Position numbers and translations under genes: made by a program | The notes under the pieces: model-generated | Databases searched by the model: none | Seen by the model: the letters and a program-made list of their open reading frames with translations, nothing else | What the model was told of the DNA's origin: nothing | In this document: positions 76 to 20,730 of the stretch, piece after piece | Numbering within the stretch: the first letter of the stretch is position 1 | How the letters are laid out: every line of letters starts with the position of its first letter | Assembly: GCF_000315625.1 (NCBI RefSeq) | Contig: NW_005434611.1 | Location: forward strand, 312,045 to 376,044 | Direction: 5' to 3' | Length of the DNA stretch: 64,000 nucleotides | From: Guillardia theta CCMP2712 | Taxonomy: Eukaryota; Protista; Cryptophyta

Positions 76-4582
<4,507 letters not shown>

Positions 4583-15457: not shown

Positions 15458-18400
15458 ATGATTCCCCTCGGAAGACTTGCTTTTCTCTTCGCCATCTTGT
15501 TTTCGACGGTGGGAAGAACAACGGAGTCGGGCATACAGCCTATGTATCTTCGCGGGGGTGGCTTGTTCGGAAAGCGAGTAGGCGGGCGATACGGAGGCAC
15601 GGTGTTGCCTTCGGCACAGATCGAAGAGATGAAGGCAAGCGAACAAGCTCAGACTGCCGCTGAACCGGCAGGAAAGGCGGAGGAGGACAAGAGGGGCCTG
15701 ACAGCGAACGATGCGGTAGCGGAGCACGAGAGATCTGAAGGAGATCAGCAGGGAAGCGAGAAGAAGGTAGCAAACGAATCCCCATCGGAATCGTCTGCCA
15801 GCATCCGCTCCGTCGGGGATGCAAAGAACACCAGCGACGTTTCTCCGCAGAAGGTGAATGTGGTTGAGAAGGAGGCGGGGGCGAGGAGGAGGTAGAAGAG
15901 GAGGAGGAGGGGGAGGAGGTGGTGGTGGTGGTGGTCGAGGAGGAGGAGGAGTGAGAAAGTGGGGCAGGAATTCAACATGTCCTCGTCGAATCTTTTCGGC
16001 AGTGATCTCCATGAGAATTTCAAGTACATCTACATTGTATCCGACAGGTCAAAATCTCCTTGCCCAGCTAGCCAGTGACCTTGATTCCTGCAGCACCGGG
16101 TTTACAGCTTCACACGCACTCACCAGCGTCATGGTGGGCTGGTCGGCATTCCAGTCGCTCTTGTAACAAGTTGGTCCTCTAGGCTCAGTTCGACTCGCTC
16201 GCTGTCGACTGGAACGGGCAAGACAACAAGGCGAAGGAGAAGAGCGGGGGAGTGCCGGTCAGCCCTGCCGTCTCCTTCCCCTTGCACTTCCTGAGACTCT
16301 CAGCAGGAGGTCAGGACGCAAATGTTCAGCAACGTCAAGGACCTCGGAAGGCTCGACAGGATCGTTGCGCTGGCAGCGAAGATGGTAAGGGAGGAGGGGG
16401 AGAGAGGAGGAGGGAGATGGGACAAGGAGGATTACAGCACGAGAAGTAGAAGCAGAGAAGAAAGTTCAAGTTAACGATTTGAGTAGAGTGCATTCATTGT
16501 CTTCACGCTGGTAGACCCAGCACTTCATACCAGGCTCTTGAACCAGTGCCGCTTCTTCAAGGTCCTCCTCCTCCTCCCTCGACCTCCTCCTCCTCCTCCT
16601 CCTCCTCCTCCTCCTCCTCCTCCTCCTCCTCCTCCTCCTCCTCCTCCTCCATTGCGGCTTTTGTTGAACCTCAAATCCTGTAGGTCCCTCATCAAGACTT
16701 GCTCGGACCTCTTGTGCGCCACCTCTCTTCCTTCCTCGAGAAGGAGCCAACAGGTGAGGGCTACAGCAAGAAGATGGAGGAGGAGGAGGAGGAGGAGGAG
16801 GAGGAGGAGGAGGAGGAGGAGGAGGAGGAGAAATCTTATCTTCATAATCAGGGCTGCCAAGAGGGTCTGTTGGGACCAAGAGGAAGCCGCTCAGCGACAA
16901 GTACTTCAAGGTAGCGACCTCTAGCAGTCTTGTATGCTGATGGGGTACAACAGCGAGTAGAGGCTGTGGAGTTCACGATCAAGCAGGACGACGGCGCACA
17001 GGTGAGAAGCAGCAGCAGCAGGAGGAGGAGGAGGAAAGATGGAGCTCGGGAGGGGAGAAAGCTGAAGGTCAAGGCAGTGCCGAAACCTCCAAAAGGCGGA
17101 CGTGATTCTTCTCGGAGTGTCGCGCAGGCAAGAAGTAGCTAACGTTCTTCCTCCTCGCTGACTTTCTTTCCCCTTGTGCAGCTCAAAGACTCCTCTGTCT
17201 ATGTACCTCGCCCAGCAGTTCGGATACAAGGTGAGACCATCCGTTTCCTCGACCTCGCGCTCTGCATGCTAAGCGCCCGCCTCTTCTCCTTACATCGCCT
17301 CCTCGAATTCCTGCCATCCTATCTCACTCTCGTTTTCTTCCCTACTCCTGCTCTCCGTCCCTCCCTCTCTCCCTCTCTTCCTCCCTCCCTCCCCTTTCAT
17401 TCACGCAGGTCGCCAACGTGCCTCTGGTTCTCAACATTCAGCCGCCCTCTGAGATCTTCGAGGTCTAGAGCTTCCCTGAGCTCTCAGCTGTCACAACCTG
17501 TCCAGGTGGACCCCAGGAGAGTCTTCGGGCTGATCATCCAGCCGCAGTACCTGAGGCGGATCCGTACTCGACGGCTGGCAGGGACAGGGGTGGACACAGA
17601 GACCATCGGCAAGAGCATGGGGAGCTTCGACTACAGGTGGGGAGCCAGCTGGGGACTGACTCTGAGCTGACTCGATCCTCTGCCAGCAACATCAAGTACA
17701 TCCAGGAGGAGCTCAAGTGGGCTCGTGACTTGTATGCTGCTCACCCCGAGTGGTCCGTGGTGGACGTGACAGGACGAGCGGTGGAGGAGAACGCAGCGAT
17801 CATTGCCGAGCTGATGCCGGGGAAGCCGACGCCAGTAGAAGCTGCTCTGCATGCGCTGGACTGCAACTTCTTCATCCTGGAGCCGAGCAAGAAGTCGGTT
17901 GAGTTTCCAATCGTGTTTGCGAGCGACGGCTTCCTGCAAGCGACCGGCTACTCGAGGGAGGAGATCATTGGCAAGAGCGTCTTCATGCTGCACGGGCCCA
18001 ACACCGAGCGAGAGGTCATCACCAAGGTGCGGGAGCATCTGCGGGAAGGGAAGGAGGGACACTTTGAAATCCTCAACTATCGCAAGGACGGCTCGACCTT
18101 CAACAAGGACGTTCACCTGAGCCCCGTCCGCAACTTCGAAGGGGAAGTAGCCTTCATCTTCTGCACACAGGTAGAGCTAGAGCCCCTCGCTCCTGGCTTC
18201 AACCCCACCAGGAAGCCCGACGGGGCGGCGGCTCAGCCCACGGAGGAGGACGGAGACTTCAGGAGGGACCGGGTGGACAAGGAGAAGACGTCGGAGATCC
18301 TGAGGAGCGTACACCACCGGGGCTGGATCTCAGTGAGTATCTCCGATGCCTCCGTCCCCGGCATGCCCATCGTCTTCGCCTCCGAGGGCTTCTTCAAGAT

Positions 18401-18790
18401 GACCGGATACGAGCCGGCGGAAATCCTGGGGCACTCGCTGGAGAAGCTCTACGGGGCCGACTCTGACCCAACCACCGTCGCCATGATCCGAGAGGCGATG
18501 GAGACCCACCAGGCCGTCAGCACGTGCATCCTCAACTACCGCAAGGACGGGAGGAGCTTCTGGAACCACCTCAGCCTCCAGCCAGTTAGCGACTCGTCGG
18601 GCTCCCTCAGATACTACGTGGCTACCCAGGTGCTTCAAAATTCTCGCTATCATCCTCCCTTCCCGTTCTTGACCCTGTCCGGCAGTACACGGGAACGAGC
18701 GGGGTCGGCAATCTTGTTCGCGACTGCGGAGCAACATTTCCCTCAGGGCTGCAGACACACGCGTCCATCACTCCCTTCCTCCCGACCTGA
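15458..18790 (+). CDS. Pyruvate,phosphate dikinase regulatory protein (PDRP/PSRP, DUF299 kinase-pyrophosphorylase) fused to two C-terminal LOV-like PAS domains; N-terminal signal peptide; about 15 exons
   Basis: Spliced: KYIYIVSD|STGFTA..AFIVFTLVDP..DLLGPLV..LSDKYFK|RVEAVEFTIKQDDG..ADVILLGVSR|SSKTPLSMYLAQQFGYK|VANVPLV..VFGLIIQPQYLRRIRTRRL..Y|SNIKYIQEELKWARDLY..WSVVDVTGRAVEENAAII. The same exon continues into two PAS domains (PIVFASDGFLQATGYSREEIIG..NYRKDG..TQ and PIVFASEGFFKMTGY..NYRKDGRSFWN..TQ). Confidence 0.92.
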
Positions 18791-18799
18791 GCTGCTGCA

Positions 18800-20730
18800 A
18801 AGGAGACCATCGAGACCAAACTCCCTCCCCTCCTCTAGTTCCTGCGCGTGTCTTTTGTTTCTACCGGCATTACACGACTCGACTGCTACTCTCCTGCGCT
18901 CTTCTTCGGAAAGAACTTGGAAATGTCCAGCTGCTTTCCAGGTCACGGGAGCAGGAGACCGCACGCACTGTCACCTGCGAGCTCTTCTTCCCCGGCGTCG
19001 AGGCCTTGGACTTCTTCGTAGGCGGCTCCTCCGGGGGAATGGAGAGCGCGTAATCCTCGCAGAGCAGCTCCTGCGACTCCAGCGAGTCGAAGGCCTCTCG
19101 CTGTCGTCCATGTGAGGGGAGGAGGAGGAGAAATAGGTAGACATGGGGAAGGGGAGGAGGAGAAGCGCGAAGGTGGGAGAGGGGAGAGGAGGACGAGGAG
19201 GAGGAGAGCATTGCAGCTCACCCGGAGAAAGCCGAAGAGCTCAATCGACAATAGCCAGAGGGGATGCCGCTCGTGCTGCGGTCCGACACGCCGAATCCCT
19301 GAGGGAAGGAGGCGAGATGAAAGGATGAGACAAACGAGAAGAATGAGAAGAAGAGACGAAGTCAGTTACGAGAGGCAGACACAGATAGTCAGATCGATAG
19401 AGCGAGGAAGAGCAGCAGGCGACAGATCAAGGAGGAGGATGAGAATGAGAGGAAGTGACGAAGCACAGGCTATGTAATGCATGAGGACGGGGGGGATATG
19501 AAGGATGGAGAGGGAAGGATCGTATCGTACGTATGCTGGAGGTAAACGCTGGGAAATTCTGCACAGAGCAAAGGCAGTCAGGATGAGAAGGGAAGAGGGA
19601 AGAACAATCTCACCCCTAGCTCTGTGTCAATCTTGAAATGATGGAGGGTTTGCCGATTCCCGTCCAGGAGGTGGGAACTTTGCTGGTCAAGCAGCTCCCA
19701 TTCCCCCATCACCTTCTGCTCAATCACCCAATCCTTCAAGTACGTTCCGCAGTCCCTGCGGCCCCAGGCTTATAAGGAGGGTCTCACGAGGCAGGTTCGA
19801 GGAGGAGGAGGAGGAGGAGGAGGAGGAGGAGGAGGAGGAGGAGGATGTAAGTCCAAGGGGAGACAGACCTCGAGCCGTTTCGGAGGGAGTAGCTCTCAAC
19901 CCTCATCTCGAGTCCTCGTTTGAGAGAAAACTCGAAGAAGACATTGTCGTTATTATCCTCACTACCATCATCGTCAGCCCTTCTTTTCATCATCCCACAC
20001 TCTTACTCCGGCACGGCAACACACCCGTCGCCGCTCTTCTTGCCCGCTAGCATGTCCTCTGGCCGTCTGAAAGCAGCATCGTAGCCAGAGCTAGTCACCT
20101 CGATCACTCCGAACTTGACCGCCTTCTTGCCGAGAAAGTTGAAGATGCCTCGCTCCTCCCCTGGCCCTCCATCGAAGTGGCAGAGCGAGTCAGCCTTGGG
20201 GAGTTTCTCGAGAATGTGCGGGAGGTCACTGAAAGGATCGTTCGAGAGTTCGTCGTTACAGGAGGCATCGAGAAGAGATGCTGGCACAGCTGCGTGCTCC
20301 TCTTCCTCCACCTCCTCCACTTTATCCTCTCCCTTGTGCTCCGCGATATCCAGTGGGTCTTTATGCTTCTTTGATTTTCCGCGTTGGACTGTTGCGACGG
20401 TGTCTGGGTCTATCGGTTTGTGCGGGGTCTTGACATCGAGAGAAGAATCGGACAAAAGCTTGCATGCCCCTTCCTCCTTCTGCCTCGGTAGGAACAAGAG
20501 CTTTCCCGTGTAGTTGTTCAGGCTAATGGAAATATTGCCGTCTTGACACTGAAAACGCCCCGATCAGTCTTGTCATCTAGCGACATGTCAAGCAACCTGA
20601 ATCTGTGCGTTCTCGTACGTGGAAAGCTGTAGTTTGACTCCACCGACGAGCAGGTCAGGCATTGCGAACGAGTGCTTGTCGCAGATGAAAGGCTCATCGT
20701 GGTCACTAGACGCTGAATCACTAACATACA
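18800..20730 (-). CDS. Hypothetical protein with galactose-binding-like (F5/8C/discoidin-like) domain; multi-exon
   Basis: RGIFNFLG..IEVTSS..FFEFSLK..MRVESYSLRNG..YLKDWVIE..GEWELLDQQ..LLSIELFG resembles this beta-sandwich pattern. Boundaries are approximate. Confidence 0.5.

Follow-up and report, generated by a model that had tools for sequence, protein, structure and literature searches.

The 64,000-nucleotide window analysed here, from the cryptophyte Guillardia theta CCMP2712 (contig NW_005434611.1, positions 312,045 to 376,044 of the forward strand), contains a gene at window positions 15458-18790 in which a PPDK regulatory protein (PDRP) is fused to two consecutive PAS domains of LOV descent. 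The PDRP-PAS-PAS fusion is real and transcribed. The protein is probably an intact PDRP regulator that carries a LOV-derived, non-photochemical regulatory PAS module and a C-terminal tail, and that enters the secretory/complex-plastid route.

The fusion had been proposed earlier from the letters of the window alone (the original prediction), together with the claim that it was no splicing or assembly artefact. Exact spliced mapping of P0001, a transcript-derived protein of 750 amino acids from MMETSP, gives a coding region on the forward strand that runs from ATG to TGA in 15 exons, and the spliced product is 100% identical to P0001 with zero mismatches. Thirteen introns are of the GT-AG type and one (17128-17181) is GC-AG, its GC donor being backed by transcript contigs from three studies. 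Spliced transcript contigs of 2420, 2848 and 3029 nt, each from a separate study, have the same joints as the P0001 mapping and extend from 5' of the ATG, past position 17850 and across both PAS domains, to the tail exon. Exon 14 encodes the end of the PDRP ('NIKYIQEEL...DVTGRAVEENA'), the linker and both PAS domains (LOV-A and LOV-B), i.e. residues 403-716, and exon 15 adds a 34-residue tail and the stop codon (18788-18790). Since both the transcript contigs and exon 14 span the PDRP end and the two PAS domains, the fusion is neither an assembly nor a gene-model artefact. The further claim that the PDRP runs into the PAS domains within one exon holds for the last ~40 PDRP residues, whereas the remaining core lies in exons 2-13. 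Raw RNA reads (run X22) contributed 4 reads on the window, too few to add weight.

The open frame 17637-19115 matches the Kinase-PPPase profile of Pfam at positions 215-255 of 256 and then PAS_9 twice, and a database search with this frame returned P0001 plus several relatives of 700-770 residues with the same three Pfam families. The architecture is hidden in the G. theta reference annotation, where the gene is split into fragment models (window 16852-17800 and 18340-18629). The NCBI model EKX40984.1/XP_005827964.1 ('hypothetical protein GUITHDRAFT_43527, partial', 161 residues), a member of the 90%-identity cluster of P0001, is a PDRP-domain piece whose P-loop is mis-spliced at the GC-AG intron, so that it reads 'GVSRRQETP' and not 'GVSRSSKTP' as in the transcript. 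A separate 98-residue NCBI model covers LOV-B only.

The architecture is not a one-off. PF03618 (Kinase-PPPase) loci were sought in the 87.1-Mb, 669-contig G. theta assembly, in which the studied gene lies on G000:C63. Three loci were found, i.e. the studied gene, a close paralogue (C20) and a more distant one (C87), and all of them encode a PDRP with tandem LOV-like PAS domains; no stand-alone PDRP was seen among the PF03618 loci of this genome. Three clades can be distinguished. Clade A contains the studied gene, a Rhodomonas lens sequence, the Baffinella-like P0010 and marine metagenome sequences. Clade B includes Teleaulax amphioxeia and has very degenerate PAS domains, the first of which is barely detected by Pfam. 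Clade C contains Hemiselmis andersenii A0A6U2FPY2 (named 'PAS domain-containing protein'), Rhodomonas salina and the C87 paralogue. Among the relatives found, PDRP-PAS fusions are confined to cryptophytes (Guillardia, Rhodomonas, Hemiselmis, Teleaulax and Baffinella). An exhaustive HMMER search over 1.84 billion representatives gave no further PDRP+PAS protein among its best 150 matches, and the long multi-PAS proteins among these 150 are without PF03618. We note that P0380 (MGB1596237.1), a fragment from a metagenome-assembled genome labelled 'Promethearchaeia archaeon', falls into the 90%-identity cluster of the clade B protein P0124 and is probably eukaryotic contamination.

A quick tree of the PDRP domain placed clades A and B together (Shimodaira-Hasegawa-like approximate likelihood ratio test, 87) and clade C apart (100). 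Clades A+B and clade C stand in an unresolved polytomy with stramenopile PDRPs, and a single fusion is neither supported nor rejected by the tree. Two of its rows are mislabelled as 'solo', namely a duplicate of P0155 and P0225, the latter grouping with the G. theta C87 row. The simplest reading of the shared linker and the tandem layout would be one ancient fusion for all clades.

No publication on a PDRP joined to PAS or LOV was found, the LOV catalogue of Glantz et al. 2016 lying outside the literature covered; in this respect the architecture is undescribed, as had been suspected. The accompanying statement that PDRPs are stand-alone proteins is not quite correct, as there are rare bacterial PDRPs joined to HTH and CBS domains or to the dikinase itself (HTH_11 + PDRP + CBS; PDRP + PPDK/PEPS; P0198, P0210, P0207). 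In other words, fusion of PDRP with ligand-sensing domains, or with the enzyme on which it acts, can occur. The bacterial fusions differ from the cryptophyte clades in that they have other partner domains and are unrelated to them, and as metagenome predictions they may include mis-joined gene models. The same holds when P0208 is counted in: these four metagenome proteins have PDRP with HTH_11 and CBS, with CNNM and CBS, or with a complete PPDK/PEPS, and may be real or read-through models. Another unusual arrangement is seen in the green alga Cymbomonas tetramitiformis, in which P0129 and P0140 are tandem PDRP-PDRP proteins of about 700-770 residues with two full PF03618 matches.

The PDRP part of the G. 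theta protein is complete, as originally proposed. It matches PF03618 from position 1 to 255 of 256 with 261.9 bits (cut-off 23.5), and the motifs IVSDSTG, EAVEFTIKQDDG, GVSRSSKT, KVANVPLV and DVTGRAVEENA are all present in P0001. The near-invariant columns of the family were defined as those with at least 90% identity among 75 stand-alone PDRPs. Of these columns 49 out of 52 are unchanged and the other three carry conservative replacements (L>M, L>I and R>K). The G, V, S, R, K and T of the P-loop are invariant across the 75 proteins, and GVSRSSKTP is intact in the G. theta protein. The only solved relative by sequence is the maize chloroplast PDRP (PDB 5d0n/5d1f; E 1.8e-64 for 5d0n), whose GVSRTGKTP aligns with GVSRSSKTP. 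The core thus looks catalytically intact, and the chemistry is presumably that of other PDRPs.

Maize PDRP forms homodimers and has a single active site, which lies in the C-terminal domain with the P-loop. Its substrate is the PPDK Thr that precedes the catalytic His by two residues; this Thr is phosphorylated solely in the phosphohistidine form of PPDK and is dephosphorylated with inorganic phosphate (Pi) (PMC9138534, PMC6019023). The plant chloroplast proteins (maize PDRP1, PDB 5D0N/5D1F; Arabidopsis RP1) share with the G. theta protein a full-length Kinase-PPPase domain and the motifs SDxTG (N-terminal), GVSRxxKT (the C-terminal P-loop), KVANVP and DVTG..EE, and plants, like G. theta, have a PPDK with a T-S-H target loop. 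The plant PDRPs are, however, stand-alone proteins of about 400-430 residues including the transit peptide, whereas the G. theta protein starts with an endoplasmic-reticulum-type signal peptide and an acidic extension and has two LOV-derived PAS domains plus a tail on its C-terminal side. The bacterial PSRP/PpsR proteins (E. coli YdiA, DUF299) belong to the same family and have the same presumed chemistry, i.e. ADP-dependent kinase and Pi-dependent pyrophosphorylase activity on a dikinase (PMC2817694). They differ in being single-domain proteins of ~270 residues that act on phosphoenolpyruvate (PEP) synthase and lack both a targeting signal and PAS domains.

Both PAS domains clearly belong to the LOV lineage by their sequences. 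PAS_9 is matched twice in the full protein, and the boundaries in Table 1 agree with those predicted (~17850-18180 and ~18325-18629). The best PDB matches are LOV1 and LOV2 of Chlamydomonas and plant phototropins and the aureochrome LOV (E 5e-25 to 1e-20), with LOV-B matching Chlamydomonas phototropin LOV1 (8qi8, 1n9l) at 5e-25; the LOV family membership that the original prediction assigned is thereby upheld. Outside the PDRP-PAS family the closest database relatives are phototropins and plant TWIN LOV proteins, and the mean identity of the domains to 68 canonical tandem LOVs is 37-44%. An origin of the tandem by recent internal duplication was rejected, since LOV-A and LOV-B are 38% identical, no closer to each other than each is to canonical LOVs. 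Strong matches to the LOV part were also given by P0213 (4197 residues) and P0214 (3055 residues), which contain about ten LOV-like PAS_9 domains each; P0214, which was scanned, also has RhoGEF and RGS domains.

An AlphaFold2 model of residues 145-750 (mean predicted local distance difference test, pLDDT, 78) has confident PDRP, LOV-A and LOV-B folds, with pLDDT 80-90 in the PAS folds. The inter-LOV linker has low values (35-57 at model residues 425-449) and ends in a helix (model residues 447-468), and the tail is disordered (about 28).

Two consecutive LOV-type PAS domains are also found in phototropin (LOV1-LOV2) and in plant TWIN LOV 1 (LLP/PLP), and the motifs FASDGF/FASEGF and NYRKDG..F and the terminal Q are common to these and to the PDRP-fused domains. 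The G. theta module differs in lacking the adduct Cys and in having 4 out of 8 flavin sites replaced in each domain (the Cys included). It is C-terminal to its enzyme, whereas in phototropin the LOV domains are N-terminal to the Ser/Thr kinase, and the second domain is not followed by a J-alpha-like helix as in phototropin, a Gly/Pro-rich tail being present instead.

The loss of the flavin signature is conspicuous. Eight flavin sites were compared, i.e. the N, C, R and Q of NCRFLQ, the R of IRDAI, the N of LNY, the N of FWN and the Q of GVQ, and all of them are invariant in eight canonical LOVs. LOV-A has S-V-F..H / R / N / K / Q at these sites, and LOV-B has S-L-E..Y / R / N / N / Q. Among orthologues, the Cys is replaced by V or P in LOV-A and by L or I in LOV-B. 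The site of the NCR Arg, which holds the phosphate of flavin mononucleotide, is F, T or W in most LOV-A sequences (R in P0010 only) and E, D or L in LOV-B, and in place of the FLQ Gln LOV-A has H and LOV-B has Y, M or R. The IRDAI Arg site varies in both domains (R, W, Q or S in LOV-A), and in LOV-B this site and the LNY Asn vary freely. Since the flavin sites drift between orthologues, selection on a flavin pocket is improbable. Judging from these replacements, both flavin binding by the PAS module and canonical LOV light sensing by its domains are unlikely.

These data also bear on the proposal that the protein is a true blue-light-gated PPDK regulator, in which at least one LOV-like domain binds flavin and signals without the adduct Cys, e.g. 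by flavin photoreduction. Such signalling by Cys-less LOV proteins has been reported, the LOV descent of the domains is clear, and LOV-B of G. theta keeps the IRDAI Arg, both Asn and the GVQ Gln. The organism is photosynthetic, and the action of plant PDRP tracks light/dark (PMC6019023). Nevertheless, comparison of the motif GxNCRFLQG revealed no adduct Cys in any member of the three clades, the phosphate-holding Arg and the FLQ Gln are replaced as described, and the remaining sites vary in a way that speaks against a flavin pocket under selection. Moreover, at least one canonical LOV with an intact GRNCRFLQG is kept elsewhere in the genome (C36:509885-510034, 'YTREEILGRNCRFLQGPDTDRDD...FFVASQVD'); G. 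theta thus has true LOV photoreceptors alongside the degenerate domains fused to PDRP. A blue-light gate is thus improbable. In other words, of the regulator originally envisaged, which would couple light, redox or a ligand to PPDK phosphorylation, the architecture and a likely link to PPDK stand, and light sensing by LOV photochemistry does not.

The PAS module has not simply decayed. That three paralogue clades and five genera of cryptophytes have kept it indicates that it is under functional constraint. Residues 399-720, which comprise the C-end of the PDRP, the linker, the PAS pair and the first part of the tail, are 71% identical between Guillardia and Rhodomonas lens; the PDRP domain reaches 76%. 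The linker AELMPGKPTPVEAALHALDCNFF between PDRP and LOV-A is near-invariant, and the LOV-A pocket has a new set of residues (His, Asn, Lys and Gln) that is invariant in 9 out of 9 clade A sequences.

This pattern has to be weighed against the view that the tandem receives no signal and is a structural appendage from an ancient fusion, serving dimerisation, scaffolding or docking of PPDK, with regulation by the levels of ADP and Pi only, as in plants. PAS domains often dimerise. The residues of the LOV-B pocket show little conservation, the first PAS of clade B is degenerate and barely found by Pfam, and PDRP itself is homodimeric (PMC9138534). The invariant LOV-A pocket, the near-invariant linker and the fact that three paralogue clades have kept the module at about 70% identity point in the other direction; together they suggest more than a passive role, and we regard a signal-free appendage as unlikely. 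A more specific and rather doubtful extension of the regulatory reading is that cryptophytes rewired a tandem LOV cassette as a non-photochemical sensor on every PDRP. In that case the His/Lys pocket of LOV-A would bind a metabolite (a phosphorylated C3 compound, a nucleotide or pyrophosphate) and gate the kinase/pyrophosphorylase, possibly together with a tail that mimics the PPDK loop, and a single polypeptide would link the signal to PPDK, an arrangement without a plant or bacterial counterpart.

The tail itself raises a separate possibility, i.e. that it mimics the phospho-carrier loop of PPDK and, as a pseudo-substrate or a site of autophosphorylation, fills the PDRP active site until it is released by the PAS domains, comparable to the release of J-alpha from phototropin LOV2. 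The tail sequence '...FPSGLQTHA[S/A][I/V]...' is conserved in Guillardia, Rhodomonas and P0007 (from one more transcriptome), and it shares G[ML]xxHA[AS][VI] with the PPDK loop GGMTSHAAVV. Among 392 proteins (218,000 residues) this motif is confined to the tails of the clade, and the tail takes the exact place of the LOV2 J-alpha helix. On the other hand, the match is short and was spotted post hoc, the position of the regulatory Thr of PPDK is Gln in the tail, and the Baffinella-like P0010 and the clade B and C proteins lack the tail, with none seen downstream of the C20 paralogue. The disorder of the tail in the model gives no structural support for docking, and a complex prediction of the PDRP domain (residues 145-450) with the tail (residues 717-750) scored 0.00, which weighs neither way. 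Loop mimicry by the tail is highly improbable.

The presumed target was sought in the same genome. A single G. theta locus, on G000:C236, has PPDK_N, PEP-utilizers and PEP-utilizers_C together and carries 'RGGMTSHAAVVARGWGK', whereas three further loci have PPDK_N only. The target loop is the canonical GGMTSHAAV with the Thr-x-His arrangement of regulatory and catalytic residues. In this PPDK a signal peptide comes first and then a Ser/Thr-rich, basic segment up to 'AVLHLRGG', after which the conserved mature start 'RVFHFGKEG' follows. The presequence of the studied protein is similar. Of the organelle-targeting presequence that had been predicted, an N-terminal stretch of the signal-peptide type is seen, with a hydrophobic core at residues 7-18 (Kyte-Doolittle maximum 2.44 in an 11-residue segment at residues 8-18) followed by a basic stretch of 21 residues (4 K/R vs 1 D/E); it continues as 'MYLRGGGLFGKRVGGRYGG', and 'MYLRGGG' is found here in comparison to 'LHLRGG' in PPDK. 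Both paralogues (C20 and C87) and orthologues of all three clades likewise have LRGG after the signal peptide. The shared presequence type suggests that regulator and PPDK are targeted to the complex plastid and processed along a common route. We note that LRGG is also the ubiquitin C-terminus and a deubiquitinase cleavage motif and could mark a shared processing step in complex-plastid import; it is also frequent by chance in GC-rich six-frame translations.

The reading that we favour is a non-photochemical regulator; its activity as an enzyme, its action on PPDK, its location and any input that it receives are inferred. The nuclear-encoded protein would enter the secretory/complex-plastid route by its signal peptide. 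There, the PDRP domain would phosphorylate, with ADP as the donor, the regulatory Thr beside the catalytic His of the sole PPDK (loop RGGMTSHAAVVARG) and would strip the phosphate with Pi, so that conversion of pyruvate to PEP is switched off and on. The tandem PAS domains, as LOV descendants that lack the photoreactive Cys and half of the flavin contacts, would bias the balance of kinase and pyrophosphorylase non-photochemically, either through a small ligand or partner protein that they bind or through control over how the dimeric enzyme dimerises.

Several points weigh against this mechanism. The enzymatic activity is read from sequence for every family member. The predicted template modelling score of the AlphaFold2 model is 0.58, i.e. 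the relative placement of the domains is uncertain, and allosteric coupling between them is therefore put forward as a proposal only. LOV proteins without the Cys can bind flavin, and the sequence alone would still allow this here. There are three PDRP-PAS paralogues and one detectable PPDK, and some of the paralogues may have other targets or compartments. An aromatic residue after the signal-peptide cleavage site is typical of cryptophyte stromal proteins, and residue +1 of the likely cleavage site is non-aromatic in the studied protein; the predicted complex-plastid location fits the stroma or the periplastidial compartment.

Table 1. Features of the PDRP-PAS gene in window coordinates, and LRGG motifs at other G. 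theta loci
Feature	Position	Strand	Description	Basis
Signal-peptide-like N-terminus	15458..15514	+	aa 1-19, MIPLGRLAFLFAILFSTVG	Kyte-Doolittle
'LRGG' motif in presequence	15548..15559	+	aa 31-34; conserved GLFGKRVGGRYGG comes next	Recurs in PPDK, paralogues and orthologues
PDRP / Kinase-PPPase domain	16028..17804	+	aa 153-441, exons 2-14	PF03618
P-loop GVSRSSKT	17114..17191	+	aa 320-327; split by the GC-AG intron	Joint in transcripts
PDRP/LOV-A linker	17805..17873	+	AIIAELMPGKPTPVEAALHALDC; near-invariant in clade A; holds the A'alpha helix of LOV-A (helix 451-460)	AlphaFold2
LOV-A, LOV-derived PAS	17874..18191	+	aa 465-570; GKSVFMLHG replaces GRNCRFLQG	PAS_9, flavin-site table, AlphaFold2
Inter-LOV linker	18192..18317	+	aa 571-612; partly disordered, long helix at the end leading into LOV-B	AlphaFold2
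LOV-B, LOV-derived PAS	18318..18629	+	aa 613-716; GHSLEKLYG replaces GRNCRFLQG	PDB alignment, flavin-site table
Tail exon	18686..18790	+	aa 717-750, YTGTSGVGNLVRDCGATFPSGLQTHASITPFLPT, and stop; conserved, probably disordered	Joint 18629/18686 in transcripts
Exons 1-8	15458-15853, 15968-16047, 16094-16133, 16183-16257, 16307-16384, 16487-16561, 16684-16753, 16852-16910	+		Spliced mapping
Exons 9-15	16954-17001, 17078-17127, 17182-17230, 17409-17462, 17506-17636, 17687-18629, 18686-18790	+		Spliced mapping
LRGG elsewhere	L016 3796-4010; L014 ~1430-1520; L015 ~1560-1660		G000:C236; G000:C20; G000:C87	

Two further features of the locus were seen. Introns 1, 6 and 7 contain long triplet repeats (15866-15961, 16561-16660 and 16763-16839; CCT/GAG/GGA runs), which produce long non-coding poly-P/E/R frames in six-frame translation. 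At the 3' end, a contig of run X4 extends beyond the gene and has a 44-nt joint with CT..AC ends, i.e. a minus-strand GT-AG intron (18930-18975), and a convergent minus-strand gene (18870-19250) appears to adjoin or overlap the 3' untranslated region.

Taken as a family, the cryptophyte-wide PDRPs with their conserved tandem sensor-type module appear to be undescribed regulators of the known PDRP type that are probably not light sensors. PDRP switching has been explained mainly by substrate levels (ADP and Pi), and we know of no dedicated sensor in plants or bacteria. As every PDRP copy of G. theta bears the conserved module, the organism is a natural system for asking whether and how PDRP is gated allosterically, and the case also shows how LOV domains evolve after ceasing to be photoreceptors. 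Judging from the presequence that the regulator has in common with the single PPDK, the pyruvate/PEP node may be controlled in a compartment of the complex plastid, and this control bears on carbon handling in algae with secondary plastids.

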